Position numbers and translations under genes: made by a program. A DNA stretch of 64,000 nucleotides from Penicillus capitatus (taxonomy: Eukaryota > Plantae > Chlorophyta), in the NCBI GenBank assembly GCA_965649825.1, contig OZ287709.1, positions 186,001-250,000 on the forward strand, read 5' to 3'. This document shows, one piece after another, positions 3,890 to 51,133 of the stretch (within the stretch, counting starts at the first letter, position 1; the number at the start of each line of letters is the position of its first letter). The notes below the pieces were generated by a model. The model made no database searches and was not told the origin of the DNA. It saw only the letters and a list, made by a program, of their open reading frames with translations.

Positions 3890-6800
3890 ATGCGCAAAGC
3901 CTGGCGTCATGCCACGTCAAGCGGCCCTGTCTTATGCCCTGCCGTCCGATCTTCTCTCAGAACGCTTTTTACAGCGCCGCCGACGATGAATCTATCGAAT
4001 TCGAGTTTTATGGTGTGGGGTGCCGGAACCGACGTTGGGAAAACGTTGATCTGTGCCGCTTACGCCTACTATGCCAAAAAATTCGAGGTCCTCCTATCCG
4101 CCCGCTCTTTTCTCCCTCTATCCTGCTGACAGAGGAGGCTGCGCTACATCAAACCGGTGCAAACGGGCTTCCCCGAATCGAGCGACGCTGCATTTGTGGT
4201 AAGGGATGTTACATTACATGACACGGGTAGGTAGATAGGGTCATAACGTTCATCTCGTTGAGCAGTTCGGGAAAGGAGTTACGTTTTGGGATCAAGCAAC
4301 ATTCGGGGGCGAATTTCATACATTGCCGTTTTTTACGGCCTGCGTTTGGCTTTGTGCTTGACTCGTGGCTTTTTCGTCGCATATTCAGACGGACTAGTGA
4401 CGCTTGGATAGACAGGAAGGAACCAGTTCGATCTGTAGTTCGCGGCTTCTTCATCTTCACTACTACTCTCTTTGTCTTCCGGATCTACGCCGCACCAGCG
4501 CGGGAGAGGTGTCTCGTTCGAAAGTGGTTCTTCCGCCACTGTGGGTAATGTACTGGGCGGCGGCGTACTGGACGATCTTGACGTGCCAGATGCAACGATT
4601 GGCCTTTGTCTGTTCAGCATACGATGCGTCTTGGAACTGCTTCCTATGCTGAAAACGTTGGCTGTGCTGGAACAGCTGAGCGCATTGCTCTGATGACTGG
4701 CGTCACTGGGCAGTGGACTGGGTGGTACGCTGGGCGCTGTCCAGAGCGCCGAACTGCTTTCCGTGTTGGAAAGTACGAGCGCATTGCTCTGATGACTGGC
4801 GTCACTGGGCAGTGGACTGGGCGCCGTCCAGAGCTCCGAGTTGCTCCCTGTGCTGAAGACGTTGGCTGTGCTGGAACATGTAAGTGCATTGCTCTGATGA
4901 CTGGCGTCACTGGGCGGTGCACTGGGCACTTTTGAGAGCTCTGTTCGCCCGTCGACCTCCATTTCGATCGAAGGCGGCGGGTTCATCGAAGGTGAAGGCT
5001 TTTGAAATCGAGTCCTCTGACCAGGACGTCGTCTGTGTCTGCGATCCAAGCATTTTCCCGACGTAAAATGGCAGACATCTGGCGGTCGATCCGGCATCGA
5101 TTGAGAGGGGCACGTGGCTGGTTGTGGTTTCGTCGGTCGCGTCGAAGGAAGGTTGTCGTGACATATCGGTCGCGTCGAAAGAAGGTTGTTGTGCCATATC
5201 GGTTGCGGAGGTGTCGGGTACGGCGACATGGACAATGAAACGCTCGCCGCATCCTCCCGCATGTCTTCGTTCGAAGACATATCCGTATCCACTAACGGCG
5301 TCAGTATGCTGGTCGGTGTCATCGTGTCGTTCGTCGGCGCCATCTCTGCCGTGCGCTTTGCAGAAGGGAGCATTCGTTTGAACGTTCTGGCTCGAGACAG
5401 GAGGGGGTCTTGTTTTTCGCGTGGTCTTTCCCATTTGCCGTCTTCCGTATAGACCAACGCGACGTCGGGAATTGTCACCATTTCCCGCTTCTTTGGCATC
5501 CCCTGCCTTTTCAGCTCTCTCTGCACCACAGCTGAGATCCTCTGCATCGCCGTAGCTTCTCTCGACTGCCGAAGCGCTGCATCCCGCTCATCATCTTTGC
5601 TCTCCGCAAAAGAATGATGGCCGTCGGCATACCCTAGAGACCATTTCCGATCCGGATCTATGGAGGATGCGAGGACGGACCTAGAACAGAGATCTCCGGT
5701 GGTTTCTCGACATACGACGAAGCAATGAAGTCATCGTCACCTGGGAAGAGACAACAGTCTGCTAGTCCTACATGACGTAAAGCGCTCACCTAACCCCAAG
5801 TCACGTGGCGTAAGGCTTACCGATGACGTGTTGTGGCTTTTTGGCAAATAACTGAGCGCCGGGCTTGATAGAAGGACGCGTTTGCGACATATTGTTTACG
5901 CTGCCAATGCTCGTTGCATTGAAAACGCGCAAATGCCAAACGGCATGACGAAACGAGCGAATAAACGAAAGAGTACTGCCGTTTTGACGCTAAAGATAGT
6001 CGCACCGCGTATCCGTTTGGATGCGACGTCTTCGACGAACTCGCATGCGAGACATCTAACGCGATCTTGGTTGCGGAATTGAAGATCTCGTTGATGTTTG
6101 TAGGCTTCCAAGGGCAAAGGAGTGGAGTTCCTGGGTGAACATGCCAGAAAAGCACATCCAAAGTTTGTTTCCAGAAAAGGTGACAGTCATGTCCACTGTC
6201 ACACGCTCTTTGCCTGGAAAACGGCGTGCAGTCCACATCTTGCCGTGCAGAAAGAGGGTCGGAATCATGGGACTGTTTGGAAGAAAGCATGCGATGTCGT
6301 GTAGGAAGAGGTATTACGGACGGGGCCCTGATCTCTGCTCTTGGCAATCTGCTATTCGATAAAGATATCTCACACATGACACTTGTCGAAACGGCAGGCG
6401 GTGTTGCCTCGCCAGCGCCGTCAGGAATGCTGCAGGTCAGAGAGATGATCACAGGGTTGTCATTTCTGTATGTAAAGTGTGATTAGTGTGATGTCTACCG
6501 AGCAGTGCGTATGCCTTCTGTCCTGGTCGGCGATGCCACACTGGGAGGCATTTCGCATACATTGTGTGCCTACGACAGTCTGATTATGAGAGGCTACGAG
6601 ATCTCGGCCATTCCTATCTTCATGGATGATGATCTGGACAACGCCGATTATCTCGATCATCTGACGAAGCGGCTGGTCCACTGGCAAGGTTTCCAGAGAG
6701 CATTCGTCATTCCTTTCCCTAAGCTTCCAAAAAGTAAACACCGATGCTGGTGGCACGGAGATGACGCTGAGATGTGTGTCTGCTAAGACAAAAGTGCGAA

Positions 6801-8899
6801 AGATCTGACGCAGTGGTTTGAGAAGTGTGAGAAGGCTGTGGATTCATTGGATGCGTTTCTGTGGGATACCTCGCGTCGCAGATTTCGGAAACTCGCCACG
6901 ATGGCAGACATCGCAGAGAGGCATTACTGGTGGCCCTTTACGCAGCACAAGAGATTTCCTAAAGACCGCATCACCGTCGTCGATTCTCGACAGGGCCTCT
7001 TTCTGAAATCTTTTAGAAATCAGGTCCCTTCTGACGACGATACCGGACTGAAAACCGATGGCGAGATCCGGCCTCTCTTTGACGCGTGCTGCAGCTGGTG
7101 GACGCAGGTCACTCATTGGAAAGAGTGAGAACGTGTGTATGTGTGATGACAGGGAGCGGAGAGCACGGTAGAGTTCGATCTGCACAGCGAATTGGTACGG
7201 GCGCTGTCGTTCGGAGCTGGGCGATTTGGACACGTCCTCTTTCCAGAAGTGGCCCACGAACCGGTTACGCGTCTCACACAGAAGCTCCTCCAGACCGTTG
7301 GTACAGCCACGTTGAGATGTGTGACTAAAAGAGTGAGCAAATGCCTTCGCAGGAACTGGATGGGCATCCCGTGTGTTCTTCAGCGACGATGGATCGACGG
7401 CAGTCGAAGTCGCACTCAAAATGGCGTTTGGCAAGTACAGGATGGACAACAAGAAAGATCTCTTCGAGAACGATCAGCTCTATGTACGCGAGAGGATCGC
7501 TCAGTCCATCTCATACGTTATCCTGCCGTTAGGTGCTTGGGTTCTCCAATTCTTACCATGGAGATACCCTGGGTTCCATGGAGGCATCGCCAGAGAGCAT
7601 CTTCAATCGACAGGTCTCTTGGTATCGTTCCATGACGAAATGCATTGAGCCGCCGACCCTTATCTACCACAAGGGCGAATGGAAGATCCGGGTTCCGGAG
7701 ACGTGGCCGGAAGAGATCGTACGTGAGATGTGCCGTTGGAAAGTGGGCAACTGGGAATCCTATCATACCATTCAGCACGACAGCGTCGAGTGAGTAGTCA
7801 CTTCATCCATACAACGGAGCATGGCGTTGTACTTAGTGAACAGAATTACTTTGACTGCTGCGAGTTCTATGTGAATACCTTCATCGATGAATGTCAGGAA
7901 CAGCATCCGATCAGCGATGGACGACACATGATTGGTGCGTGCATCTTGGAACCCGTTATCCAGGCTGCTGGTGGTATGGTGATGATCGAACCGTGGTTTC
8001 AACGTGTCGTTCATCGAGTAAAGAAGATTCTAACCTCGGCAAGGGGAAACAAGAGATGTATGTGGTTCGGTAGATCTGTCAGCAGAGAGATATCCCGGTC
8101 ATTGTGGATGAAGTCTTTACCGGTTTCTGGCGATTGGGGTACATTTCGGGAGCCAAGATGCTCGGCATCATGCCAGACATCGCCTGTTATGGAAAGCTCA
8201 TTACGGGAGGGATGGTGACGCTCGGTGTGACGTTGGCATCGGAAGACGTGTTCGATGCTTTTGAAGGCGATGGAAAAGTGAGAGCTCTCGCCTCTCTGTT
8301 AAAGTCAGTAGGCATCTCACTTTAAATGGCCACAGGAGAAGGCGCTGCTCCATGGCCACTCATACACTGCCAATCCTGCCGCCTGTTGCGCAGCGATCAC
8401 GGCGATCAATATCTTCCATACCAAAAGATTCAACCCGAATCTGAGAAACGAGGAAGACACGTTTGAAAAGCAGCAGCTCCCGGTCGCCTTTCCCAAGGAG
8501 CCCAAATTGCAGCCGCAGGAATGCATGCTGGTCAATCTGTGGGACCGCGCAAAGGTCGATGCACTCTCACACCTGTCCTGCATCGAAGGCCTCGTTTCAA
8601 TCGGAACCGTCCTCGCTGTCACACTCAAAGTGCCTCCTGCGATTTCTTATGCGTTTGGTAAAAGAGATGGCACTGTGCAGACGGAAGGGGAGAAGGGATA
8701 CGGCTCCGGTGCTTCGGTGGATGTGGTCATGGCGCTCAGGGAAAGAGGCATCTACACCCGTCCCTTAGGCAACGTTGTCTACATCATGGTGGCACCCAAT
8801 ACGCCACGCGAGACGTGCGATTGGCTGATTCAGACACTCGTGGATGTCATTGTAAAAAGCACGTCCAGGGAACAGACCGACATCAGTGTCTCTCCCTAA
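3890..8899 (+). CDS. BIO3-BIO1: Bifunctional dethiobiotin synthetase / 7,8-diaminopelargonic acid aminotransferase, multi-exon
   Basis: VWGAGTDVGKT P-loop, YIKPVQTGFP, TLFAWKTACSPHLA, LVETAGGVASPAPSG, LVGDATLGGIS, WWPFTQH, FDACCSWWTQ, DDGSTAVEVALKMA, SYHGDTLG, ILEPVIQAAGGM, DEVFTG, PDIACYGKLITGG, HSYTANP, GIYTRPLGNVVY. Second intron is 4199-6103 (1905 nt, phase 0). Confidence 0.95.
4209..4218 (-). promoter_or_regulatory. Tandem TGTAA polyadenylation signals of the nested gene
   Basis: Plus-strand ttacattaca reads TGTAATGTAA on the minus strand, about 115 nt downstream of the nested gene stop at 4333. TGTAA is the established chlorophyte poly(A) signal. Confidence 0.55.
4333..5890 (-). CDS. 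Uncharacterised low-complexity Ser/Pro-rich protein, 3 exons, nested antisense in BIO3-BIO1 intron 2
   Basis: ATG at 5890 (MSQTRPSIKPGAQLFAKKPQHVI), two phase-1 GT-AG introns (about 80 and 47 nt), then a ~1.3 kb terminal exon containing the 404-aa ORF. Ends in basic KKPRVKHKAKRRP; internal repeats PSDASHQSNAL x3. Confidence 0.65.
4682..4915. repeat. Three copies of a 30-nt core with 99 and 105 nt period inside the nested gene
   Basis: gcattgctctgatgactggcgtcactgggc at 4682, 4781 and 4886; periods are multiples of 3 and encode PSDASHQSNA. Confidence 0.9.
5133..5206. repeat. 33-nt tandem repeat, about 2.2 copies
   Basis: tcggtcgcgtcgaaggaaggttgtcgtgacata / tcggtcgcgtcgaaagaaggttgttgtgccata / tcggttgc. 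Confidence 0.85.
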
Positions 8900-10193
8900 A
8901 CGGTTGGAAAATGTCGAATGTGTGACGTCACTCTCTTTGTGAATCGAAGCAAAAAGGACTTTATCTGGATTATTTACTTATGCTAGGTTTCTGTGGGCAT
9001 AAGGAGTGACAATCCCTCCCCTTCAAATCCGATCGCATCAGAGTCACCCATCTCCATGTCGTACTCACTCTATTGCTTTTTCTTCGAGCCAGTAACCCTC
9101 CCGTCTCTGCATCCACCAGATGGGTTGCCATGCCTTTGCTAAAAAGGGCAATCATCTGACGTTATGTTATTTTTGAAATCGCACCTGCAGCGATCTTCGA
9201 AAACAAGAAGCCAGATACGATGTGGGCGCTAGAGTGTGATGTGACATGCCGAATGCCGTGGTAAGGCAAATTGATCGGATTCTCTCGATGGGCGACGTCG
9301 CGATACATCATCATGTGAAAACACCTTTGCCAAGAACATAGGTCTTCCCATCTAACACCGCATTCCATCATACAAGTTCTATCGATCACAAGACGGGTCA
9401 AATCATTCCATTGCCATGTCCTTTTCCGAACAGCTGTTCTTATCTCAATGCAGAAAGAAGCCTCTCTGACAAACATCGATACAAGGTCAAGAGTTGCCTG
9501 TCCATAGAACGGCGTTGTGAGTTTGATGGGACGGCGTCATGTGTTTTACTTCTCTCTGTTACCCTCCCGTGTCAAAGAAGTGCGGTCGCACTTCAATCGT
9601 AACGAAGACAAATCGCTTTCCAAGCACTCTATCTACTTGTTCGCGCGCGCCTTCTTCTTCGATGTCCTCGCAAGAGCTGGAAGACCTATCGCGAAGATCC
9701 ACACCGACTGGTTGTCCATCTCTGTTGCCAAATTGATCACGGACGATAAGAATGGTGGAGTGCGTGTCAGGAACAAAGACGCTTTCTATAAACTGCAGGG
9801 TAGGAATGCAGGTTCTGGCGACAAACCAACAGATTCATCGAAAAGAGTAGCGAGTGCATAATGCCTTACGATACCTCTCGAGAGACGATCGCCAGAGTCA
9901 GGGCAGAGAAACGTGTGGCGTCATCTCGTCATACTAGCTCGTTTCATACAGAGACATGCTTCTTGTGTAGCTCGGCTCCTTCTCCTTCTGTGCATAAAAC
10001 GGACAGTTGGCAGCCTTCGATCTTAGTCGAATACCCTCATAATTTATGATAATTGCGTCGTGAACCTGCTTGATGACGACCAAAAACGTGTGGAGCGGGA
10101 GCACCAGCACCAGCGGATTGAGGCTGACTCTACCCTAGACAGCACAAAGCGACACCTCAAGTACAAACCACGCATTTGTCTGAACAGAGAAAA

Positions 10194-11878
10194 ATGTGGC
10201 GTGTTTACACAGGAATCTTCATCGCTTACTTGGGTTCCTTTAACTTCGGTAAGGACTTTGCGGAAGATCTTTTTGTTTTGGTCTTCATGCGGCCGTGCCC
10301 GCAGGCATCGCACTCGTCATCGTCAACACGATGCTCGATAACTTGTCCGAGGATTTGACGTTCGAGAAAAACGTCGGAGGTGCCGCGGTCTCATCGATCT
10401 TCTACGTTGGTGCCATGCTCGGCGGACTCGTAGCTGGGCCATTCGAAAAAGCGAGCGGCAAATTCGCGCAGCTGTGGATCGGCGTGTTGTACGCGTGCGG
10501 CAACATCATCGCCGGCCTCACCGCAGACCACAAGTTCTGTTGGGGAGGACCGTTCGATGGATGCGTTGCCGACATGCTGTTTGCTGGACGCGTTCTAACC
10601 GGATTTGCGTCGGGTCTCATGCTCGTCGTCTCGCCAAAGTACGACATGGCAGGAGAGATTTTTTGTTTTGATATCTGTGTGGCCAGGTATCTGGCAACAG
10701 TCTCGCCTCCAGAGATACGAGGAAAAATTGGAGCTTGCTCCCAGGTACGCCTTCTCTCATTCTATCTCACTCTTGTTCATCCAGTGTCGCAGTTGGCCCA
10801 GACTATTGGCGTGTTCTTCGGGCTGCTGCTAGGCATTCCGTACGAGTTCAACGAAGACTTTAAGATCGGAGAGTACGAGTGGTGGCGACTCATGTTTCTC
10901 TGCGTTTCGGTGCCGCCCATTGTTCAAGTAATCGACCTGTTGCGTCTCGCGCTTGTCTTACATTCTTTCGTTTAGTGTGCATTGACATTTCTCACATTTC
11001 CACTCTTTCGCCAGTCCATTGAAGAAGTGAGAAAGGACTTTAGCAAGAAGATATCTAAGCAAGACATCGAGCTTCAGCCTGCGACAGAACAGAACGAAAC
11101 TGCTGCAGGTTCTCAGTCATCAGCAAACGAGGGTCCCCGCGAAACGAACGGGACATTGCCTGTTACAACAGACGAAAAACCGATTCAAAAACCGCTTCAA
11201 AAAAGACTTCCGTTCGTGACTGCATGGACAAGCTTCAAGAGACAGGTCATCTTGGTATTCAAACCGAAGTATCGTCACTGTGTCATCCTGGGGATCGGTG
11301 TTCCGACTGTGGCCCGGCTCTGCGGCGTTAACATACTGGCATCCTACACGACGACGATCTTCGAGAACGCTGGAATGGATCGCGCCATCATCGGCAGCGC
11401 CCTTTACGGTGCGAGCAGCATCATCAGCAGCTTCATTTCGGTTGGTCTCTTTGATAAGTTTCAACGCAAGACCATGGCATACGCAAGTTTCTCTATCATG
11501 GCAGCCAGTTACTTGGGCCTGTCGCTGTCAGATCTAGCCGGATCCAGCGTCGCCGGTCCTTCTTCCGTGGTGTTCGCTATCATGTTTACCTTCGGTTTTC
11601 GCACGGCAAGCGGAATTCTGTATACCTCATATGCACCAGAAGTCGTTCCGTCCGAGATTGCCGGAATCGTCTTAGGACTCGGCCAATCGCTTTCATTGCT
11701 CGTATCTTTCACTCTGGTGTTGGCGTTCCCTTCCGTTCTCGACGCGATCGGGGCACTGGGCGCGTTCCTCATTCTTTTCTGTTTCTGCATTTTATCATTG
11801 CTCTTCCTGAAGGCCTTTATGATCGAGACAAAAGGCCGAGAGTTGAGTGACATTGCAAATGAGCTTGTTGGCGCTTAG
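10194..11878 (+). CDS. MFS sugar porter ST1 (pGlcT/GLUT-like), 5 exons
   Basis: MWRVYTGIFIAYLGSFNF|GIALVIVNTMLDNLSEDL...GRVLTG...PK|YLATVSPPEIRG...SQ|L...WWRLMF...Q|...IETKGRE. Architecture matches pGlcT (VNGALEYLAKDLG, YISEISPTEIRG, WWRTMF, ETKGR). Four ~50-nt introns. Confidence 0.9.
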
Positions 11879-13535
11879 CAAGCGCGTAGCGTTTTTCTTA
11901 TGAGACAAGTAAGGTCCAAGAACGGTGACGTGTGGTAATCCTCTCAGATTTTTGTTTTTCCTGTTTTGAAAGAGGCTGTAGTTTATTCAGCGCTCGGATC
12001 AGGCAGGTTTTTTGGATGGCTCCATACTATTTCAAATCAGCAGGGTTTTTTAGAGACGATGAACTCAAGCAGAATGGCAGATTTAGGATCAAACAAAGAG
12101 TCCCATTAATCACATAACACGTTCTAGCGTAGTTCCAGTGAATCCAACAATCCTTCGACATCTGCAGAGTTGGGAAGTGATTCATGGTTCTTAGAGAATT
12201 TTTGGCGTTGATCAATGAGCTGGTAGGATTAATCGAAGAATAACCTCCTTCCCGAATGTCGGAATGGTATTTGCAAAAATCCAAAGATACCAATCCCCTG
12301 TTGTGCATGAAATTTCTGATTGTCGAACATATTATGTGTCGAAGTCTTATCATTTTAATTGCAATCATTAGAATTTGTTGTTGCTCAAATAGCGCCGATC
12401 CATTTCGTTACGTATCTTCTTTCAATCGCTCCATGCGGAAGACTCTCGACAACAATGCATCTCCATATGTTTCAAACAAGATCATGGAAGAACGTGATAC
12501 TGGAGATGCAAGGGAGTCTAATATTGGACGAAGACGGCACACACCGTGACAGAGAACGAACGACGCGCCGTCTTTCGAATCCGAATGAACAGAATAACTT
12601 ACCGAGCGACTTCCGAGAGAATGAAGGCCAAGGACTCTCTTCTCTGTACGTAGTCCATTCAAGACCTAGCTGAACAGAAAGAAAGCCTCGACCAAATCTC
12701 ATTAGCTTCGAAACTTCGGACTATTGGCCGGAGAACTTCGAGAGTAAGAAGGAGTGTGCTTGCCATCCGGCGGTAAGACAAACCTGCCATGCTTTCGGTG
12801 TCATCTTTATTGGGTCTGCATACTTTGTTCGAGCTTGAAGACGAAGATGTGTCGTGGCAAGACGTGCATCTTTCGCCAATTCCTCTGATATATCAACATC
12901 GGATAATGTGACCCAGATTTGCCATCGCCATTTACCAGATTTCCGTGTTCTTTTAACAAGCCAGTCCAGCCAAGTAACCGTTGACGGTAAAAGACCCTCG
13001 CCGATCTTGATCCCTTCGAGGGTATTCGAGGCATCTTGAGTCGGCTGTGTCTTCTGCACTGGCAGAGGCGGGTCCAAAACCTGTTCCATTAGTCATTTTC
13101 AAGAGTAAGAAGACGACGAACATCCTCACTCGCAGACGATCTGGCTCTGAATCAGACAAGGCATGGTGTGAACAAGAAGTCGCCCAGAAGGTGATTTCAA
13201 AAGACTTTCGTGCTGCTTTCGAGAGGCATAAAAAGCACAGTTGATTTGGGATTCGTTACGTGCGAAGCTCGACGACCGAGTAGGACTTGACACCGCGAGT
13301 CACAAGTCAAAGTCGTCCGCGACACTCTGCTGACAGAGGAGCTGCAGTGCGTGCGCGTACGACAGAGGAGCTGTCACACGAGTGGTCGTCAGTAACGCTC
13401 GTCGACGCATGTCGACGTTCATGACGCGTAACCATGCTCTTTATACTAAACAATCGCTTCAGATTTGGGTTCCCCTGTTACTATCTTCTCGGTCGTTTTG
13501 CGTTCTGTCCTTCACGTTCAAGAAATCCGTACTCT

Positions 13536-14278
13536 GACTCGCCTCTGGAGAGAGATTCTTAAATCCAGGAGGGGCTTCGCCAGCGGCATGTTGCCATGTT
13601 CTCCTGGTGGTTCGTGCATCATTTGTTAGGTTGTTAGCGTATGTGTACATTGTACTGTTTTGAGTACGTGCAAGGGTCGATCCGTGACAGTTGTCTCATG
13701 TTGCTTCTCTCTTGTGTATGCCGAAGATGTCTTTGCAGTATACTGCAAACCGAAAGTAGAGTCGGCTTTCTTGGATCAGTGTTCCTAGTTCCTCAATTAA
13801 CAGATCGTCTTGGTAAAACAGCTGTCTTCGTTTCTCTTTCAAGGCTTCACACTGGAGAAGATGGTCCCTTGTTTCTCTTTGCTTCCCACATCCTCAGCAT
13901 AATTCATTGTCTATCTCGGTTCCCTTGTTTCGGAGGTATTTTAATGTTGGGAGATGTCCCGAGAATACTTGATTGATGTGTGAGATACTTGCCCTGGTCC
14001 AGCTCAGATCTTGGAACCATGGACGTTGGTGGATGCAATGTTTCCAGTTCAATTGTTTCAATAGAGTACCCCGGCCACTGTTGTGCCATTGTCTTGAGGC
14101 TTGCCATTCATAAAACTGCCCCGTCTGTTGTCTGAATCGTCGTCGTCTTAGTCGGGTTTTGGTGAGGATTGAAATCGTCTCCGCCGAGCCATTCCTGTCT
14201 GATGGTAACTGGGATTTTTGGATGCGCATTCATTTAGCTCTGAGGAAGTCTATAGCGTGAGGGACTCGCCTCTGGAGA
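13536..14278 (-). mobile_element. 5'-truncated non-LTR retrotransposon (LINE) fragment of 711 bp between 16-bp target-site duplications
   Basis: gactcgcctctggaga at 13536-13551 and 14263-14278. The intervening DNA is absent from the paralogous site near 54405. Minus frame 14229-13696 reads FSGHLPTLKYLRNKG..LC*GCGKQRETRDHLLQCEAL, a CCHC knuckle typical of LINE ORF2 C-termini, with one internal stop. Confidence 0.75.
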
Positions 14279-15643
14279 TGCTCGACTTCGTCTTGCCGCT
14301 TCGAGGCAGTTCCGTGACGTTCCTTTCCGACTCCGCACTGACTCCACGTCGTATCGCGTCGGCTGCCGATAACGTCTCTTTGCTTTTCTCGACGTTTCCT
14401 TTCTCGTCTGATTTTGTGCTTCTTGTGCGCTGCCTTGAAGTTTGCTCGAAGAAGTCGACGTTCTCTGCGTCTGGCTGACTGAAATCGCTATTGTACACGC
14501 CGCCACCCAAAACCTCGAAAGTGTGTAAATCCCCCACTTCTCTGTCATTCTTGTCGATTACTCAGTGTTTGCCAGTAACGGTGACATTTATCCTGTCCAC
14601 TTCGCGAACTCATCTTGCCTTAAAGCGACCAAGTGAAAGGCCTCTGGGCAGGATTCGCACTCGGGTCATCGGAGGACTTTACACGAACTCGGAGCAAGGT
14701 GTTGAAAGGTTCAGATCGCCATTTCATATTCACGTGGTGACGCGACTTCCCAGTCAGGTGAGTCATCCCGTGCGCAGAGCCACAGAAAAGAGCCCATTCG
14801 GGGCTCAAAAACCTCATTCGACAAGACAGCCAATGCCCCCGAGCAGATGATCCCTGCCACAACAAGACAGTTACAGTGACAAGGAAACTCTGGTCGACAA
14901 AGTATGCAAGAGAACTACAACATACTCAGCATCGTGAACTGTCCTGACGACAGCGGCTATTCAATGATCCATGGATCATTGCAACTCGGCATGTTGGTCG
15001 CGACATTCATTATCCGCGCTGCATCCGAAGGCCGATGTTAGAAACGCGTTTCTCTCTAACAGGCGCTGTTCCTTTCGTGCCTCTTCTCCTTTCCTTCCCC
15101 GTTTGGTCGTCGTGAATTCTCAGACGCCCAGAGTTTCGTTCGACGCGTTTTGTTTTTCGGCAAATGCCCCACCCGTCGTCGCTCGAACTCCCACGTCCGT
15201 CAGGTTTGGCGTCGTCCATTCACGATACCGCGGCAGCCGCGCAGACAATCCAATGACAAACTTGCCAGCCCAGCAGAAATCTCGCATACGTTTAGCGAAC
15301 GTCATGTCTGAGAATTTTGGCAAAGACCGTTGGCAGCACAATACTGTGTACAAGACAGAGATCGAAGCGGAGCTGTCAGTGATCTCGTAGGAGAAACCCT
15401 GGCGGCGTCAAAAAACGAGTTCGTAGTCGTGCCGAGCATCATTTGCGCAGAGATTTCTTTGTCGCCAAGGCGTAAACGTGATAACCGCGTCGTCTGCGGT
15501 TTGATGTGCGACGCTCACTTCGTAAACGGCGCGCAGCAGACGTTTCGTTTACCATCAGAGTCGACACGTTTGACAAGGAGACGGGTGCATCATGTTACTG
15601 CAAAAAGGGATCTCTGATTTCTTCGACGTCGAGGTCGACGAAA

Positions 15644-15934
15644 TCACTCAGTAGGGGATGCTTCCTCCTCATAGGAAACGCACATACCTTTACAAAAAGG
15701 GCAGAAAACGTCGGTACAATCAGCATCGAAAAAGCATGCCTTCAACTAAACAAACAAAGGTCTGTTTAGCTCGAACGTGTGGCGCCTGTGTCTTACGCAG
15801 CCAGCATTCGTGACGAAATTTTCCAGACGGGAGCCGTGCGGGTCGGGGTGAATGACCCTTCCTTCCGCGACGAGCGCGAGGTGCGCCACTGCGACGAGGC
15901 AGATCAACAGAAGAGCGCGAGCTTTGAACGCCAT
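15644..15934 (-). CDS. Secreted 79-aa six-cysteine knottin-like peptide, 2 exons
   Basis: Exon 1 15934-15797 (signal peptide MAFKARALLLICLVAVAHLALVAEG...NAGC), 51-nt gtaag..tttag intron, exon 2 15745-15644 LKACFFDADCTDVFCPFCKGMCVSYEEEASPTE*. Cys spacing C-x3-C-x5-C-x4-C-x2-C-x3-C. Confidence 0.75.
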
Positions 15935-17038
15935 CCTCGAAACTGGAAAACGATGCTGTCTGAACGGAAAAAAAGCTCATGGCCGACCGTTCAGACTTTA
16001 TACGTGAAGTTCACGATCGCGATGGTCCCTTCATTTCCCAAAAGACGCTGGTCGTGCTGTCTGAGCCTTTCGTTCAGATGCAACGATCATGATGATTTGG
16101 CAGCAATTCCCAGCAGGACAGGCACAGCGAAATGGAGAATGCAAGAAACAACAGCTGTTGCCATGTGCTGAACGAGGACTACAAAAAAGCTGCAGTCAAG
16201 ATGAGGATGGGAGGGTCAACAGTTAATCCATGGGCCTCCTTTGCGATGTTCACCCATCAGGGCACAGATCGGTAGACTCAGTTGCTGAAACCCAACAGGC
16301 TTCCAGCCACTCCAAGCGGTGAAGCACAACAGGCCAGCTTGATCGGTTCAGGCTCTACATAACAAGAGGTGTGAGGTGAAGCCGAAGAACAGGTCATGTG
16401 TCCAAGGGTCAGACATCTGCCGTCTGGCGAATCACACGGAAGAGACAGCAGAGAAACACGATTGGCAACGGATAGATTGTGAAATACGTTGACACCAGTG
16501 CATCCTGATTCCCATTTGTTTCTCAGATCTTATATTCGTCAAGATCTAGCCCGACATCTACGTTTCTTTTTGCCTTTTTCGTGTTAACTACATGGCTTTG
16601 TGTATGAGTGTCTCGAGTGAACCGGACTATGACGAAATCCCTGAGCGTACATCTTTCACCAAATCGTTAATCGTAAAAAGGCTCTGCAGATTGTATAAAA
16701 GCATTAACAGCAGCCACGGTATCTGGAAACAGAGAGATAAGTATCGCATTTCTATTACAAATAGTGTTGATTGCCAATATCTGTCGACCAACTTTGACGC
16801 CGAATGCCAGACGGTTGTCCATTTCACCAGGGGTTGGTGACCTTATGATTTCCCAGCTATTGCTTCTTGCAGCGACCCTCTACATTTCTTCCGAAATGTG
16901 CCAGTTCTCAATTCATCTCGTCCTACTCCTATCCGTTTTGATGAAACTGTCACCGTCATGCATTTTTTCGCCTACTCATCTGATCGCACGCAAATTGGCC
17001 ATCGCGTTATCTTTATCGTCAGACCGTGCAGTCGGACA

Positions 17039-17215
17039 ATGGGACCAGCAAAGAAAGCAGGCGCTATTTTTGTCAAACTCGTCAGCACAGCCGGGACGGG
17101 TTTCTTCTACGTGACGAAGCGCAATCCGAAGAAGCTGACTCGGAAACTGCAGTTCGTCAAATACGATCCCAGAGTGAACGCACACGTTCTCTTCACGGAA
17201 CAGAAATTAAAATAA
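17039..17215 (+). CDS. RPL33: Ribosomal protein bL33, organellar (probably mitochondrial), 58 aa, intronless
   Basis: [58 protein letters not shown]; hallmark VKLVS.AGTG.FY and KYDP. Confidence 0.92.
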
Positions 17216-17252: not shown

Positions 17253-18370
17253 TTAACTAATCTTCGCCTGAGAGAAATCCATCTCGGGATGCGCAGCCAT
17301 GAATTTCTGTAAGATCTCATTCTTTTTTTGTTCCTCGCTTGTCGGCAGTCCCATCTGTTTCTGGCGCTGGTCAAACTACAGCATCACTCCTGTGAGCACC
17401 CACCCTTCATGCCGTCACGCCGTACCATCATTTTTTCGACGGTCTGTCGGGTTTCGCTGTCGAGGTCTGAGAGGTTGCTGTTTTCGGGCGTGACCTTTTG
17501 TGTGTTGATCTCGGCATCACCCTCCAAGACGTTCTTCCACCACGTCATTCCGGTCTGTTTCGCCAGGGTCAGTTCCACCCTTCCATCCACTAACCACACA
17601 TCGCCTTTAACTGTTCGGCCATCGGCACATATCTTACCCATATTCCAAAAACACTCTTCTGGTCGAATCGCAGCTGAAAACTCTCCCTGCAGTACAATAG
17701 ACATATGAGGACTGGACAGAATGGACGTCGTTTCGCACTTCGAGGATCGGGTGCTCCGCATTTTTGCGAGCGATTCTGAGATGCTTCTTCTCGTAAACGA
17801 CATCCAAATCTCGAGCTCGGATGTTCGCGTCGACAGGCACGGACAGACACACTTCACTCAGCGTCTGTGTCCAACTGTAGTTCTCGTAGTCTGCCCCATT
17901 TCCGGAATTTGGCACTATAGGCAAGTAGACCATTCAGCAACTCCCGCACCCACGTGGCATCTCTCTACCCATTCCCTTCTCTTCTTCTGCCGTCTCTTCT
18001 TCTGCCGGTTCCTCTTCCTTTGAGCTGGTGGCTGGCGGCGGTTCATGACTCGGCGCTTCCTGAGTTCTCTACACGGCACATGGATGTTGTCACATCGTCA
18101 TTCAGAAACGGCTACCGGTTGGGATTGGGGTTTAGTCGTCGTTCCACGTGTGTGTTTCTTGACGCCTGCTTTCTGCAACGCCTTGATAACGGGAACGCGG
18201 GGATCGTTGACGCTTTGAAAGTAATTCGTCTTCCTGTTGACAAAGGTGAAGACCGTGCTCAAAAACGCATCGACGTTGTCATTATGACGGTCAAGCATCT
18301 CCGTCAGGGAGCGAAAAAAAGTCGAAGGGTCGACTTCATGCGTGATATCTTCAATCTCGCCAACGCTCAT
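17253..18370 (-). CDS. NUDC: NudC/BOBBER-family co-chaperone, multi-exon
   Basis: [73 protein letters not shown]|[18 protein letters not shown]...[16 protein letters not shown]. Confidence 0.93.
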
Positions 18371-18954
18371 GACGTCACAGAAAAAGCGTTAAGCCAGACG
18401 TGATGCAAAATTCGCACTGCCTGACGTGACGGAAGATGTTCGCGGGCACTTAACGTTAACGACCTCCCTGCCTTCTGTCGAAATTCGCAAACGCCGCATG
18501 CGGCAGTACGGTTGTTTGCAGAAGAGTCCATCGTCAGCGTATGGCTCGCCAAAACGCCGTTTGTGGCCTATATCTCTTATAATATTAAAAAATGCACGGC
18601 AAGGTGTAATGAAGGTTCTGAATTTTATCGTGCCAAATGTCAACGTCTGTTACGGAATTCAGACGTTCTGCTGTTTGGTGAGAGCAAGACGGAGCAGCGT
18701 CGATACTGAGCTGCGTCTGGTGTCGATATACGAACGGAGATGGATAGCCCGGTGGCGAAGTCGTCGACAGTACACGACGGAGCTCGCGAAAACGAACTGT
18801 CGTATATCATCCGTCCGTATGCGCCTACTTCACTTCTTCTTCACAGCATCGATGGTCCGTTCAATCAAGGGAGTCGCTGTCTAGACCGTTGACGGTACAA
18901 ATGACAGGCCTCTGCAAAATAGTCTCGCACTGTTAGTTCTGTCTGTCTTCAAAC

Positions 18955-20628
18955 ATGTCAACCTACGGCCCAGCCGTACTCGTTTGCTTGCTTGGACCCT
19001 TACAATTCGGTAGACGGTATATCCAAGCCTGTTAACCGAATGCAGTGTATTTAGGGATGGCTATGGTTGCGATGAATGCCTCATCCGGCGCCATGTCGGT
19101 ATCCTTAGGATTCGAAAAAAACGCCGGCGGCGCGTTCGCTTCAGCGGCGTTGTTTCTCGGCATGGCCTTGGGAAACCTCGGGTCGGCGGCTTTTGAGCGG
19201 TGGACTGGGCGCTACGTGCAAACGTGGATCGGTGTCCTGTACGCAACAGGGAACCTGCTCTGTGCTTGCACAACGGCGCACAAAGTGTATTGGGGCGGCG
19301 AGTTCCACGGATGCGTGGCTGTCATGCTCCTTGTTGGCCGTATCGTGACCGGGATTGGCTGCGGACTCTCCACAGCGACCTCACCAAAGTACACACGCAT
19401 CTACTGTCGCAGAGCGGAGCAAAGCAAGCGTGCAGGATCTTGACACGCATGTTCCCTCCTGACCAGCGCTATGCCGTTGTCGGAAGCTCACAGGTTTGGC
19501 TGTTAAGGATTCGACCACGATAATACCTATTCTGCTCTCATAGGTCTCCATTGTCACGGGCGTTTTCATTGGCTTGTATTCCGGACTACCATACGCCGTC
19601 AAGAATATTCCAAGCCTCCATAATATCTGGTGGAGAGGCGTTTTTATTCTCGCGACGGTTCCAGCAGTTCTGCAAGTAACCCTCAACCGCACGCTTGCTG
19701 CTGCACTTGTACAGAAATGCTCTTTCAGATGTTGCTGGGATGGTGGGTTTGTTCAAGCTTTGAACAGCCCCTTGAAGAATGTATGAGCTATCCTTCGGAG
19801 GCTTCATTTGGGGGCAATCCAGCGCAGTCCATGGAGGATGATATCGAGGAAGGAAACAATCTTGCCGAGCCAGATCTCGAAGGAAGCTGCTCCTCCCTCT
19901 CCACAGCGCCATCGTCTTCGGCCAAATCGATAAGCTCTCCTCAACCTCCTAAAGCAAAAAAGCCGAGCATCGAATGGCGCGACGTCTTCAGTGTAGAAAA
20001 TAGACAGTCAACCATCTTAGCGATCGGTGTCCCCGTCACAAGCGCATCGGTCGGCTTGTATACGACCACGATGTATTCGGTAGATATCTTAGAAACGGTC
20101 GAGTTCCAAGATACTGTCTCGGGAAGCATTCTTCTCGGTTTCTGTATGTTCGTCTCCAGTGCCTTCATTGCCTTATACTTAAAAGCAGTCGGTTGTTCAA
20201 AAACCTTACTTGTTAGTTTGTTCGGTCTCTCTTTAGCTTGTATCGGAATGTCGATCTTCGATGTGTTAGGACGACATCTGGGAGAACCGTTAGCTGCAGT
20301 CATTCTCATTCTTTGCTTTCCGGTCTTTGTTCCCGGGTGTATACTGTTTCCTCACAGTATAGAACCATCTTCAACTCGGATACCAACATTTTTTTGGACC
20401 ACTGGACGTGTTCTGACATCCTTCGTCGCGTTTTTCCACGCTCTGTTTTTTCCAAGTCTGCTGAAAGCAATAGGTGTCCAATGGTCTTTTTTGATTTTTG
20501 CATTCTTCGGCCTTTCAACTTTTCTTACCGTCGATAGGACACTGTTAGAGGATTGTGGGCAGAGAGAAGAGTCAGCCAAGAGGACCTCGAATGAAACACA
20601 TGGATTAGAGAATGCGGAATGCGCTTGA
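18955..20628 (+). CDS. MFS sugar porter ST2 (most divergent paralogue), 5 exons
   Basis: MSTYGPAVLVCLLGPLQF|GMAMVAMNA...HKVYWGGEFHGCVAVMLLVGRIVTG...WWRGVF. Same four intron positions as ST1; C-terminal ETKG motif lost. Confidence 0.8.
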
Positions 20629-21035
20629 TGGGATCGTGTATAGAGAGAGACTCAACAATCTCAACCCTAGATGTCAGGAATGGATATAAAGTGCGGAGTC
20701 CATCCATCCTGTTACCTAGATTTACGCCGCTGTACATTAGGTACGATGGCAACCGCGCAAGATCAATAAAGCACGGTCTCGGTTTCTGGATCTTTCATCA
20801 GAAGACAGCTGTAAGATGAAAGGTGGTTATTGACGATGACCCACACGATGATCGTCTGTACACGTCTTCAATAAAACGACAGACGATATATATATCTCTG
20901 CAGAAAGAGTGGGTGTTTGGTGATCATACTTCAATCAGTAAGTTATGTGCACTCTCGATGATGTTAATATGATGAGTTCTATGAGTTATTTCGCTTCATT
21001 TATTTTCTTTAACGTGTCAAGGCAGGCTGTACGAG

Positions 21036-44579: not shown

Positions 44580-47183
44580 TCAAGGAGACAGGAGTCCAAT
44601 GATCGCCTTTCGGACTTTGTCTGAACACTTGGCATTCTTGTCTTTGCAGACAAGGTCGAGCGGAGTCGCAGCATCGTTATCCATGGGCGTCTTGATTGCC
44701 CCAGCGTCTACCAGAATCTACCAAAATACCTCTGAGGAAGAGCGACGCCAGTTGCGGGTTACCTTAGCCATCAAGAAACGACCATACAAAGCTGCCAAAT
44801 GGAGTGGCGTCCTTCCGGCCGCATCGAGCACTTCGATTTCTGCACCGTGGTCGACCAGCATCTTTAAACATTACTGGCAACGCAGAAAGCCAATCAGAGA
44901 CGACTCACTTTGGTGATCTGGACTCTGTTATAAATTGCAGCGACGTGCAGTGGAGCGGCGCCATGAATATTGAAATTGTTGAACTTCGCGCCAGCTTCAA
45001 TTAAAATCTTCCTCGCACAAACAACACCTGTACTTAAGAACCGATGCGGTGCGAAACGCACCTTCGCAATCTGCGCGTATCCGTTGTAGATAGATCCTGT
45101 CAGCGGAGTCCAGAAATTGTTGTTATACGTTTTTAGGTCTGCCCCGGCTTCGACAAGAATCTACCGCAGATGTGTCCAAGGTAGAATGTGAACAGATAGG
45201 AATAAAGCGACCTTTGCAATATTAGTGTGTCCATTTACTGATGCTTCGTAAAGTGGAGTCCAGCCGTTGTTCGCGATAGTGTTCACTTCCGCGCCGTGCT
45301 CGACAAGAAGCTTTCGCAGTCTTCAACAGATAATCGGAAATACAGAAAGGCATTACCTGTACGACGAAGTTGAAACGTTTTACCGTTGCCAAGTAAAGAG
45401 GTGTCATGCCGTCTGCATTGATAGCATTGATGTCCGCCCCATGGTTAAGGAGAACCTGTTCATACAGCGAATGCTGCAACACTGAAAGAGGTCTCGCCCA
45501 CTTTGAGGACTGCGTGTCTATTGTGGTTTGCTGCCGTAGCCAGAGGAGTAACTGCTAAAGAATCCCGGCTATCAACTCTGGCACAGTGCTTCAGCAAAAC
45601 CTGCAGACCAGAAGCAGTTACAGGGAACCAGAGAAGAACACATCTGTGTGGCGACATCTATAGATTCTGCACAGGAGTCCCCGGATTTACCTTGGCGCAC
45701 TCCACGGCGTTGAGCGTGGCGGCTGCGTGAAGGAACGTCGAGCCAGTCGCTTCAGAAAGATCCGAACCCCCTGCCGATCCATAGGGGGTGTCAACATACA
45801 GACCATTCAGGAGAATGGCCTCGGCGTCAAGGCAGTTGTCTGTTTTCACGGCAGCAATCATCGCCTGCGCAAAACGATCGTATGACACTCGACTGGCAGC
45901 GAGGCTTACCGAGATCAACTCTGCTTCCGATTTCCCTTCGTACGCCTTCTTTTTCTCCATAAGCTTCTTATCGTAACCTCGCCCTCTATCGACGCACAAC
46001 GGGCGCCTTGCGGTTGCACGTGATGAAGATAACTGCGTGCGCTGCTTTGTTCCCAATGTGGGATAGGTGTTGACAGTCGACTCGATCCAGTCGAGATAGT
46101 AGTCCACTTTTGTGTACACGACAGACTCTTCTCTCGAATTCTGTTCGGATCCTTGCAGCGCATACCCAAAGGATGCAATTCCCACGACCGAGTCCCGGTG
46201 CGCCATCCCGACCGTCGTTTTTTCGTCGGTGGCGCCGTCCGCCGCCCATATCAAAGGACCTCCCGATTCGCCTGTCAAACAGCGTGCATGAAAGACGCGA
46301 CAGGATATCATCCGGATAACCTTTGCCTACGGTCTGTCGCAGTGATCTCGCGCAGATCCAACTGTCCGAGTCGATGCCTCTCAGTCGCTCTTTGCACTCG
46401 CCTTGGTCGACCACGACGAGACGGTCCGCCACGCGCAACGTGTTCGCGATGTCGTCGAATTCCGTCGTTGCCCATCCGGCGGCGGCAAGGTCATCCTCAG
46501 AAAATAGAGGCACGTTGCCGGAACCCAGACTAGGCAGAGGCAGGTTAGCGTCTCTGTCAAGCTTCAAAACAGCCACGTCGTGCCCGCCGGCGACATCACC
46601 AGTCCACGCCGGATGCACGTATCCTGCCACCGCGTTAAACACCTGCGTCGACGTCGCCGTATCGTGTGCCGTCCGGGGAAACTAAGCTCTTGCCTTGTCC
46701 TTTTCGCTGTCCGTGGAGCCATGTGTCCCGCAGTCGACGATGGGGGTCAGGCCAACAGAACCGTCGACTTTCGGATCCACACAGTGCGCCGCCGTCAGAA
46801 CCCAGCCTTGGCGGAAAAGCGCAGCTCCGCATGTGTGCGCGTGGCTGCTTCGTTCTCTCAGGCTGCAAACGTATGGAAACCTACCACTCGAAGCTTCCAT
46901 TCCTCCCTGCCGGCCATCATCTAGTCGAGTTAATGCGACGGAGATTTCGCGCAGCTTACCGCCTTTTTCGCGTAGACGGTCGCAGCTGACGCGGTCTGCA
47001 GGTAGTCGCCGTTCAAAGCTACACGCACATAAGAAGGCGCTTCGCGAAGATCGGCGTTTCGTTTTCCGCACCTTTGCTGGCGGCCGATGTCTTCGGCAAG
47101 AGCAGCAGCAAGCATGTTGCCAAGTTCAGCAGCGCAGCCGTCGAGCTGCATGCCTGCTTAGAAGACCAACGAAGTTCGAACAT
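44580..47183 (-). CDS. Secreted S1 (trypsin-like) peptidase fused to C-terminal ankyrin repeats, multi-exon
   Basis: Hydrophobic N-terminus (AALLNLATCLLLLLPKTSA), GRFPYVCSL, VLTAAHC, GHDVAVLKL, KG|ESGGPL, VYTKVDYYLDWIE, then about seven ankyrin repeats (six on 99-nt exons) and tail TPLDLVCKDKNAKCSDKVRKAIIGLLSP*. Confidence 0.88.
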
Positions 47184-48769: not shown

Positions 48770-50427
48770 ATGCCATTCCGACTCGACATCGCCGTGGCCC
48801 TTTTGGGCCCGTTCAACTTCGGTAAGCACAAAAATGTCTCTGGTTGTCATCCAGAGTCGAGTGTTTCGTCGACAGGCTTGGCCATGTCCATCATGAACAC
48901 GATGCTGGAAGCAATCTCAGATGATCTGGGAATCGAAGAGAATGTCGGCGGCGCTGTGGCGGCCGCCGCCCTTTACGCCGGTGCAGTTATAGGCGGTTTC
49001 GTCGTCGGTCCCTTCGAGAAGTGCTGTGGACGATTCGTACAGTTCTGGATCGCCTTTCTGTATCTGCTGGCGAGTCTTCTCTGTGGCCTGACGACCGACC
49101 ACAAAATCTGTTGGGGTGGGCCATTTGACGGATGTGTGCCTTACATGCTGCTATTTGGGCGAGTGATCTCCGGTGTCGCATTCGGATTCTCGATCGTCAT
49201 TTCGCCAAAGTGGAGCGAAAGGAAATTTAAAGCTCGTCAATAATCTGTGCTTAGGTTCTTGGTCGCTGCTTCCGAGCCAACGCAACGTGGCTGTCTCATG
49301 GCGTTTGTACAGGTCTGGGATTTTATTAAGATTTCCCAGATGGAAAAGTGTCTGCAGGTCGTTGTTGCCACGGGTCAGTTTCTTGGACTGATTATCGGCC
49401 TCCCGTACGAATTCGACGACGCATTTGAACTCCGCTACGAATGGTGGAGAACCATGTTTCTCCTCATGTGTCTACCCGCAATTCTCCAGGTACGGTCTCA
49501 TTCATCGCCTAGTACATCTCATTGGTTCTGCAGGGCTCACTGGCACTCTTAACGTTGTACCGTCAATCTATGATCGGCGAAGTGCGTGGCCCGGTGTGCG
49601 AGTCCGTCGCCGTTCAGATGCCGGAGTGCGAAGAGAAGAGTCAAGAAACGGGTCACCGCTCTTCCGCATCGACCAGCGAAACGCATCCAAATGATAAAGA
49701 AGACGATTCGGAGGTGGCGGATAGTGGAAAGGCCTCTCCGTCACAGTCCCAACGCGAAAGGAGCTCTCGTCCGAATCTCAACACCATGCAGCAATTCCAA
49801 TCCATCTTCACAAAACAATATCGCCCGTGTGTCATCCTCGCCATCGGCATCCCCGTCTTCTGCCAACTGAGTGGCGTCAATGTGTTGGTCTCGTACTCGA
49901 CCAAAGTCTTCGAGGATGCTGGAATGGATGCAGCGATCGTTGGCAGTGCGATCTTCGGCCTGGCCAACATCGTTGCAAGCTCGTTTGGCATGTGGTCCTA
50001 TGAGAAGTTCGGTCGGGTCAAAACCACTCGCGTAAGCGTCATTATCATGATTCTCTGTTATTCGATCATTGCCTTGATCGACTTGGCATCGTCGACGGTT
50101 TCTGGCATCGTGTCAGCCGTGTGTGTCACTGTGTTCATTATGGCATTCGTTTCCTCTTGTGGACCCATGAACATCACCTACGCTGCCGAAGTCGTCCCTC
50201 CCGAGATCGCGTCTGTTGTTCTGGGATTGGGCCAGTCACTGTCGCTGATCGTCATTCTTATTCTAGTACTTGTCTTTCCTGGCATACTTGACGCCATTGG
50301 TGCACTGCTTTCTTTCTTATTCTTCAGCGTCGTTTGCATATTTTTCTTAGCTTTCCTCGAACTGTACATGATCGAAACGAAGGGACAAGATCCCGAAGAG
50401 ATCTGGAAGAAATCGACGAGATGCTAA
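48770..50427 (+). CDS. MFS sugar porter ST3, 5 exons
   Basis: MPFRLDIAVALLGPFNF|G...HKICWGGPFDGC...GRVISG...WWRTMF...FCQLSGVN...IETKGQ; same intron positions as ST1. Confidence 0.9.
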
Positions 50428-51133
50428 ATGCAGGATGTTATGCTTATCAACATAAGTGTATTTTTTCTTTCTTTCTTTTTTACTTTGGACAACAGAATCG
50501 AAGAATCAGCAATGCAATTGGCACCGCTGCTGAGATGCATTCAGCGTTGTTGTCTGGGTGGGATTTCAATGATGCATCATTGAACGGTTCTTGCTTTTTC
50601 ACGCATTAGTATATCCGAAATGAAAGAGTCTGCATCAACATGCAAGGTCTTTCTCTAAACTGGGTGAATTCTTATTCCTGTCACATGCAACACTGTTGCT
50701 GCAGTCCATTTTTGCAGCACCTCTAATTCCAGAACTGGATTTCGTACAAACTTGATAGAACTGCGGTTATGCACCGGCGGCCTGGCAGCACACTAATGTT
50801 AAGGATGGAGAAATACAGTTGGTGTGACAAACGAGTTTACTTTGCGCGACGTTGACGAGACATCGATCTGCACAGATGCGTCTGCTAATGGTTCGTTGGA
50901 GCTTTGTGTGCATCTGCGTTCTCTACAGGTGCATGGAACGGGACAGCTGGCAGTTTTCGATCTTAGTCGACGATCCTCATTTTTTTATGATAATTGCGTC
51001 GTAGACGTCTTGATGACGACAAAAAAAGATATGCTGTGGTACCTACAGCAACCTAAGCGGAAGTTAACTGCATCGTGGACCCTAAACCAGTATACCTCAA
51101 ATACGGACCGCACATCCGTCCGAGCAGAGAAAA

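Follow-up and report, generated by a model that had tools for sequence, protein, structure and literature searches.

A 64,000-nucleotide stretch of the genome of Penicillus capitatus (contig OZ287709.1, positions 186,001 to 250,000; hereafter the window, in whose own numbering all positions are given) contains on its minus strand, at 15644-15934, a candidate gene interrupted by a 51-nucleotide intron. We favour, with moderate confidence and on the basis of the sequence, the reading that this locus is a genuine, unannotated two-exon nuclear gene for a lineage-restricted precursor of 79 amino acids from which a secreted Cys-rich peptide would be released. Taken by itself, the claim that the locus is a real, hidden and spliced gene for a secreted six-Cys peptide is one that we hold with fairly high confidence. 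The gene is probably real because its intron is typical of this genome and because a rule-based scan of the window recovered this single locus, whereas 0.008 loci would be expected per random window.

The exons, the intron and the parts of the product are listed in Table 1. The ATG at 15934 is the first in its frame and the preceding in-frame stop lies 45 nucleotides before it. The last three bases of the intron (15748-15746) form an in-frame TAG, the sole in-frame stop, which splicing would excise; because of this TAG, the plain open reading frame (ORF) track reports only an ORF of 62 amino acids. The spliced product of 79 amino acids (MAFKARALLLICLVAVAHLALVAEGRVIHPDPHGSRLENFVTNAGCLKACFFDADCTDVFCPFCKGMCVSYEEEASPTE) is laid out as a 25-residue signal peptide, a 20-residue spacer, a 26-residue core and an acidic extension of eight residues, with one intron in the gene. 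Its Cys framework is C-x3-C-x5-C-x4-C-x2-C-x3-C, with six Cys in 23 residues and a Tyr three positions past the last of them, and the core of about 26 residues is hydrophobic and aromatic (four Phe, Tyr, Val and Met). According to the -3/-1 rule, the signal peptide would be cleaved after Gly25 (A-x-G) or Ala23. The predicted mature part comprises 54 amino acids with six Cys (about 6 kDa, isoelectric point about 4.7, net charge -5, grand average of hydropathy -0.15). The product thus combines the generic features of small secreted Cys-rich proteins: an N-terminal signal peptide (rule-based), a mature part of <150 amino acids, an even number of Cys of at least four and no later transmembrane segment.

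The coordinates, the 51-nucleotide splice, the peptide and the Cys spacing given in the initial annotation of this locus are all exact in the sequence, and the layout that it described (signal peptide, short pro-region, six-Cys core and acidic tail) is present in the spliced product. It had also supposed that the gene had been missed by annotation, and this was borne out: the gene calls deposited for the 314,878-bp contig of ENA metagenome assembly ERZ25074695 that includes the window are prokaryote-style and for that reason lack the spliced model, and the peptide is absent from the protein collections searched.

In order to judge the intron, homology-guided introns of the window were used as the reference instead of an intron-length histogram from unsupervised ORF joining, which was too noisy. 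Homology supports 13 introns, seven of them in the BioD-BioA gene and three each in transporters A and E. They are short and very sharply distributed in length, with sizes of 45, 47, 47, 47, 48, 48, 48, 49, 50, 51, 54, 56 and 58 nucleotides (median 48), a weak donor consensus (GT[ACG]...) and the acceptor [CTA]AG. Several of them are multiples of three and open in frame, so that naive ORF finding runs through them. The candidate intron reached a splice-site position weight matrix (PWM) score of 10.0, compared with a leave-one-out median of 9.5 for the true introns, and falls in the top 1.9% of 6,518 length-matched GT..AG pairs. Judged by its size and its splice sites, the 51-nucleotide intron is credible and typical of this genome. 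Two other readings were rejected. An alternative genetic code with read-through of TAG does not hold, as the in-frame stops of the transporters fall in GT..AG introns of 48 nucleotides. Blastocystis-style polyadenylation was discarded as well. The intron does contain TGTTTGTT, the motif associated with poly(A) sites in Blastocystis, but this motif is hardly enriched (seven occurrences for three expected). None of ten genes has it in the 3' flank, and each of these genes has its stop codon encoded in the genome.

For coding potential, a log-likelihood model of full codons was trained on 2,919 codons with homology support, and 110 ORFs served as the null set. The candidate coding sequence scored +0.16 per codon in frame versus -0.25 and -0.47 out of frame, which is about the median for windows taken from true exons (0.20 +/- 0.14) and exceeds 96% of the 110 null ORFs. 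Split by part, the log-likelihood ratio per codon was +0.21 in exon 1, +0.09 in exon 2 and -0.42 in the intron read in frame. The surrounding stretch of about 5 kb (12000-17000) has no homology-supported gene and weak coding signals, and the candidate is its top-scoring coding element. That the signal is the antisense shadow of a plus-strand gene was rejected, given that the overlapping plus-strand ORFs all score negative for coding.

The rule-based scan required an ATG followed by a signal-peptide-like head, an optional GTA..YAG intron of 44-55 nucleotides, a product of 50-150 amino acids and at least six Cys, in even number, within 35 amino acids. It returned one locus in the window, the candidate, whereas random windows drawn from an order-3 Markov model returned 0.008 each (5 in 617 replicates). 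Signal-peptide-like ATG heads numbered six in the window versus 2.0 expected in random sequence, and a search of all six frames found no other occurrence of the six-Cys framework in the window. The number of Cys is even, and no paralogue or repeat points to an artefact.

With respect to the fold of the core, a cystine-knot (knottin) topology is possible and is our leading candidate, the framework being compatible with it. Knottins have disulfides I-IV, II-V and III-VI, the third of which threads the ring made by the other two. Their six Cys lie in a domain of 30-50 residues, the preferred lengths of loop a are three and six residues, and loop e is mostly long, with no numeric range given (PMC2238874); the candidate has six Cys and a loop a of three, and its loop e, also of three, is short. 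The same loop a and the pattern C-x3-C-x5-C...C-x2-C are common to the candidate and to the carboxypeptidase-inhibitor class of KNOTTIN, which that database places together with 'Fungi1' in one Cys-IV class, 77 (PMC2238874). The Avr9-type fungal knottins that make up 'Fungi1' (Cladosporium fulvum and relatives) are, by description, likewise small secreted six-Cys peptides with a signal peptide, and no Pfam or PDB match of the candidate points to them.

Plant alpha-hairpinins are helical hairpins of the form C-x3-C ... C-x3-C. The candidate likewise has C-x3-C as both of its outer Cys pairs, but Cys56 and Cys61 lie in its connecting segment and a helix is improbable over its C-P-F-C stretch; similarity to alpha-hairpinins in sequence was not detected. 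A peptide that is secreted and held by three disulfides and yet is unknotted, whether as a helical hairpin built from both C-x3-C motifs (Cys46/50 and Cys64/68) or in another disulfide-rich fold, is a possible but rather unlikely alternative. These two motifs bracket the core, and AlphaFold2 run without alignment on the precursor gave a helical model with helices over both (predicted local distance difference test score, pLDDT, of 57.7); in addition, a loop e of three residues is short for the beta-hairpin of a knottin (PMC2238874). On the mature peptide, however, AlphaFold2 without alignment (pLDDT 56.7) placed short strands at Cys50-Phe52, at Val59-Cys61 and around Cys64-Ser70 instead of the helices, and a loop a of three is one of the two lengths preferred by knottins (PMC2238874). 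The two predictions are of low confidence and contradict each other. A Foldseek search of the low-confidence model against the PDB retrieved no knottin and returned only insignificant zinc-ribbon fragments (best E 2.1). A zinc-binding reading was rejected on account of the signal peptide and of the non-canonical knuckles.

Several points, to which the contradictory AlphaFold2 models belong, weigh against a genuine secreted-peptide gene. No transcript, orthologue or paralogue was found for the candidate. A word-indexed search of 5.8 billion protein clusters found no candidate relative of the peptide, an exhaustive phmmer search of 1.84 billion representatives found nothing at E <= 0.001, a scan of JGI metagenome contigs found no relative, and tblastn found no paralogue in the 64-kb window or in 86 fetched loci. 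About 90 kb of DNA from a sister species (see below) is devoid of a relative as well, although the syntenic counterpart would be expected about 30 kb outside the fetched pieces. The scan criteria were fixed post hoc, with the candidate already known. The coding score owes part of its height to the signal peptide, whose hydrophobic residues are favoured by a training set rich in transporters, and a test restricted to synonymous codons is without discriminating power in this genome. Finally, a possible further intron of 50 nucleotides makes the C-terminus ambiguous.

We consider it unlikely, but worth weighing, that the locus is a chance configuration without a functional gene, in which a random ORF that happens to begin with hydrophobic residues is followed, within the gene-poor stretch of about 5 kb, by a fortuitous GT..AG pair and an open frame rich in Cys. 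Support from conservation and from expression is absent; codon support becomes weak once amino-acid composition is removed, exon 2 scores a mere +0.09 per codon, and many windows were screened, so that an event with a frequency of 0.008 per window is expected somewhere. Against this frequency has to be set the plausible density of genuine genes for small secreted Cys-rich products, which by our own estimate is at least ten times higher. Moreover, chance would have had to supply an intron that is exactly typical in size and score and that reads as non-coding, an even number of Cys and a signal peptide with canonical n-, h- and c-regions.

We regard as improbable, though not negligible, a gene that is real but whose model differs from the one in which translation ends at 15644, and two such models were compared. 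In the first, a second intron of 50 nucleotides, whose donor opens one base ahead of the stop codon, leads into a short third exon (Table 1) and the product grows to 92 amino acids with eight Cys: the terminal Glu is replaced by DNMMHPSPCQTCRL, and the protein ends in ...EEEASPTDNMMHPSPCQTCRL with an extra C-x2-C pair. This intron is of typical size, has a good tract of pyrimidines together with CAG, and reaches a PWM score of 6.9, which the true introns bracket (0.4-20.5), but its donor scores only 0.2 and pairs as good as this one make up 5.5% of the length-matched GT..AG pairs. In the second model, the GTATGT at 15687, which has the top donor score of all (6.5), is joined to the acceptor at 15598, and the product ends in ...CPFCKVT. 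The intron would then measure 90 nucleotides, far outside the observed 45-58 (n=13), and five Cys would remain, an odd number that is unusual in a secreted peptide.

Upstream of the candidate ATG, the motif TATAAAG is found at 16002-15996, 62-68 nucleotides ahead of the start codon; it may be a TATA box or, alternatively, part of a possible intron in the 5' untranslated region (5'-UTR; Table 1). The candidate start codon would not be affected by such an intron, because the frame of the upstream exon has no ATG and carries an in-frame stop at 16089-16087. A 25-codon ATG ORF (MATAVVSCILHFAVPVLLGIAAKSS) with a signal-peptide- or transmembrane-like product lies at 16164-16087 on the minus strand, about 150 nucleotides upstream of the candidate ATG; it may be an upstream ORF of the gene, an unrelated micro-ORF or a product of chance.

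The initial annotation had likened the peptide to the potato carboxypeptidase inhibitor (PCI). The PCI sequence that it quoted is exact (residues 8-37 of 4cpa_I), and the residues that it listed as common to both peptides are indeed present: a Lys in loop a, an Asp before Cys3, a Phe before Cys4 and the C-x-x-Y. A relationship to PCI is not supported: the PF02977 match reached 12.3 bits (E 0.15) against a gathering score of 25, and loops and tail differ. In a search of Pfam (24,736 families, E <= 10) with the signal peptide removed, PF02977 was the sole family matched, at 12.3 bits for the domain and 11.7 bits for the mature peptide, and neither the full precursor nor the eight-Cys variant matched it. 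Among 18 shuffles in which the Cys were fixed, none matched PF02977 and one matched Stomagen (15 bits, E 0.026); since this shuffle outscored the real match, matches of such strength to some Cys-rich family are at chance level. A Cys-anchored global alignment to PCI scored 37, compared with 20.5 +/- 8.6 in 5,000 shuffles that left the Cys in place; with a single family chosen beforehand, this corresponds to P = 0.048. A phmmer search of all PDB sequences did not retrieve PCI, and a resemblance to the Cys repeats of copepod-type luciferases (phmmer, E ~0.8) was judged to be due to chance.

When the two peptides are compared directly, both have six Cys and equal loops a (3), b (5) and d (2), but loop c has four residues in the candidate and five in PCI, and loop e has three and six, respectively. 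Past the last Cys, the candidate carries VSYEEEASPTE (11 residues, four of them Glu, charge about -4), whereas PCI has five residues (GPYVG), and the core of the candidate is far more hydrophobic than that of PCI. All known proteinaceous metallocarboxypeptidase inhibitors have 2-5 residues past the last Cys, which bind like a substrate and usually present an aliphatic P1 (PMC9966942). The candidate as encoded does not have such a short substrate-like tail, which would arise only on the assumption that it is trimmed to about Tyr71; PCI's own C-terminal extension is removed during maturation (PMC5877539). The precursors are alike in size (79 amino acids in the candidate, 80 in chuPCI) and both have a signal peptide, an N-terminal pro-segment, a C-terminal extension and a single intron (PMC5877539, PMC12388987). 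This parallel is real but generic, being common to many unrelated secreted peptides.

It is thus very improbable that the candidate is a homologue or a functional analogue of PCI, that is, a knot whose tail would plug the active site of an A/B-type metallocarboxypeptidase after removal of EEEASPTE in the manner of the PCI propeptide. This idea draws on PF02977 as the only Pfam family found for the mature domain and missed by all Cys-fixed shuffles, on the three equal loops, the four shared residue features and the alignment, and on the parallel architecture, size and single intron of the precursors. It is confronted by the low bit score, the stronger Stomagen match of a shuffle, the loss of the PF02977 match with the full precursor and the eight-Cys variant, the silence of the PDB search, the shorter loops c and e, and the acidic tail of 11 residues. 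In addition, the known cystine-knot carboxypeptidase inhibitors are confined to Solanaceae (PMC5877539), whereas we read the host as a non-plant from the BioD-BioA tree described below. As far as comparison of the sequences goes, the likeness to PCI is no stronger than chance, membership of the family is not established and the three defining features tested are not those of the candidate.

For the preferred reading, a lineage-restricted secreted peptide, we propose the following course of events. The precursor would enter the endoplasmic reticulum through its signal peptide, for which there is evidence at the sequence level, and the signal peptide would be removed near Gly25. The six Cys would then form three disulfides, locking the core of about 26 residues into a compact, protease-resistant mini-protein, and the anionic peptide would be delivered to the exterior of the cell or to a compartment of the endomembrane system, perhaps once the N-terminal spacer and the acidic tail at the C-terminus have been trimmed off. 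The peptide would most likely act on a protein target, as an enzyme inhibitor or a ligand, rather than by disrupting membranes, the former being favoured because the peptide is acidic. The defence role put forward in the initial annotation is unsupported and speculative, and the charge of -5 is unlike that of typical cationic antimicrobial peptides.

Orphan secreted Cys-rich proteins of fungi, oomycetes and protists resemble the candidate in having <150 amino acids, a signal peptide, an even number of Cys, no homologues and a gene-poor setting. Such proteins usually occur in families or clusters, whereas the candidate is without a paralogue in the 64-kb window and in the approximately 90 kb of sister-species sequence. 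Homology of the predicted peptide to any described family is not established, and, pending a conserved copy or a transcript, it should be regarded as an ordinary orphan Cys-rich secreted peptide.

The sister-species sequence comes from ENA assembly ERZ26696514, two contigs of which, ctg303746_191.13x_l (814,653 bp) and ctg302572_147.77x_l (200,644 bp), are collinear with 44.5-64 kb of the window. They are 75-82% identical to it at the nucleotide level, intergenic DNA included, and come from a sister species whose divergence is ideally suited to testing conservation and which offers a comparator for finding genes over the entire window. The pieces fetched from this assembly are referred to as L003, L005 and L006. 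An exact look-up of the bL33 protein encoded next to the candidate, used as an anchor for the syntenic locus, found nothing, and scanning JGI contigs with bL33 yielded matches of at most 66% identity that lacked synteny. In L006, a MyTH4-FERM kinesin with a C-terminal motor, similar to KCBP, is located at 17433-20772 according to precomputed Pfam matches, and may help to place the lineage.

The window is eukaryotic nuclear DNA, and the neighbours of the candidate (bL33, NudC, Vps51, sugar transporters and BioD-BioA; see also Table 1) are ordinary nuclear genes. PAP2, FMO-like and mevalonate-diphosphate-decarboxylase-like proteins are encoded in the window as well; no tRNA and no Rfam match was found in it. 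The bL33 and NudC genes stand tail-to-tail, with about 170 nucleotides between them, at 1.1 kb from the candidate. The BioD-BioA fusion is 41-47% identical to its best named relatives, from Chlorokybus, Trebouxia, Pavlova, plants and oomycetes. It grouped with one Logan sequence (64% identity) in a neighbour-joining tree, and the two formed a deep branch of their own, apart from the clusters of oomycetes, green algae, plants and haptophytes.

The window also carries seven tandem sugar transporters of the major facilitator superfamily (MFS), for which two ENA assemblies and two Logan contigs are the only sources of relatives with >25% identity. The segment at 10.15-13.25 kb is a recent segmental duplicate of that at 51-54 kb, and the duplicated transporter copies are about 86% identical (tblastn, unspliced locus), or 96% over the C-terminal part. 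The trypsin-like protease gene lies beside the transporter array in the sister species too (synteny; L003 3104-3574).

Table 1. Positions in the window of the parts of the candidate gene, of hypothetical alternative and upstream elements, and of other genes and introns.
Feature	Position	Strand	Description
Exon 1	15797..15934	-	138 nt, 46 codons; ATG 15934-15932; signal peptide and spacer; last codon Cys46 (15799-15797)
Intron	15746..15796	-	51 nt, GTAAGA...GCTAAAC...TTTGTTTAG; ends TTTAG
Exon 2	15644..15745	-	33 codons (Leu47-Glu79) and TGA 15646-15644; Cys50, 56, 61, 64, 68; Tyr71; tail EEEASPTE 15670-15647
Six-Cys core, main part	15671..15745	-	plus Cys46 at 15799-15797; C-LKA-C-FFDAD-C-TDVF-C-PF-C-KGM-C-VSY
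Predicted signal peptide, residues 1-25	15860..15934	-	n-region MAFKAR, h-region ALLLICLVAVAHLALV, c-region AEG; passes the rule-based test
Hypothetical second intron	15598..15647	-	50 nt, GTGATT...CCCTTTTTGCAG; donor opens one base ahead of the stop codon
Hypothetical exon 3	15555..15597	-	completes an Asp codon, 13 further codons, TGA; too short for the coding test
Upstream element	15960..16003	-	possible 5'-UTR intron, 44 nt, GTATAAAG…TTTTTTTCCGTTCAG (GTATAA donor); PWM 10.5; 1 nt under the observed size range
Example introns	10639-10686, 10745-10792, 10928-10975, 58929-58978, 6436-6486, 8278-8335
BioD-BioA fusion	~6100-8900	+	dethiobiotin synthetase / DAPA aminotransferase; at least 9 short introns
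Seven tandem MFS sugar transporters	10295-11878, 19054-20628, 48875-50427, 51075-52829, 56460-58019, 58594-60162, 62429-64000	+	PF00083
Organellar bL33	17039-17215	+
NudC-family gene	17387-18388	-	Nudc_N and CS domain
Trypsin-like S1 serine protease	45661-46681	-	weak PF00089 matches in two adjacent open segments

Were the candidate a metallocarboxypeptidase inhibitor of the PCI type, which we hold to be highly unlikely, it would be the first of its fold and function class outside Solanaceae; this would imply an ancient origin, plant-microbe transfer, or striking convergence on the Cys framework and the C-x-x-Tyr tail, and would revise the view of the inhibitor family as an invention of Solanaceae. 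If the gene is real, it exemplifies the short spliced secreted peptides that are lost when genes on eukaryotic metagenome contigs are called in prokaryote style. Its product would then add a disulfide-rich scaffold from a lineage without a sequenced close relative, which would be of interest to protease-inhibitor biology and to peptide engineering.

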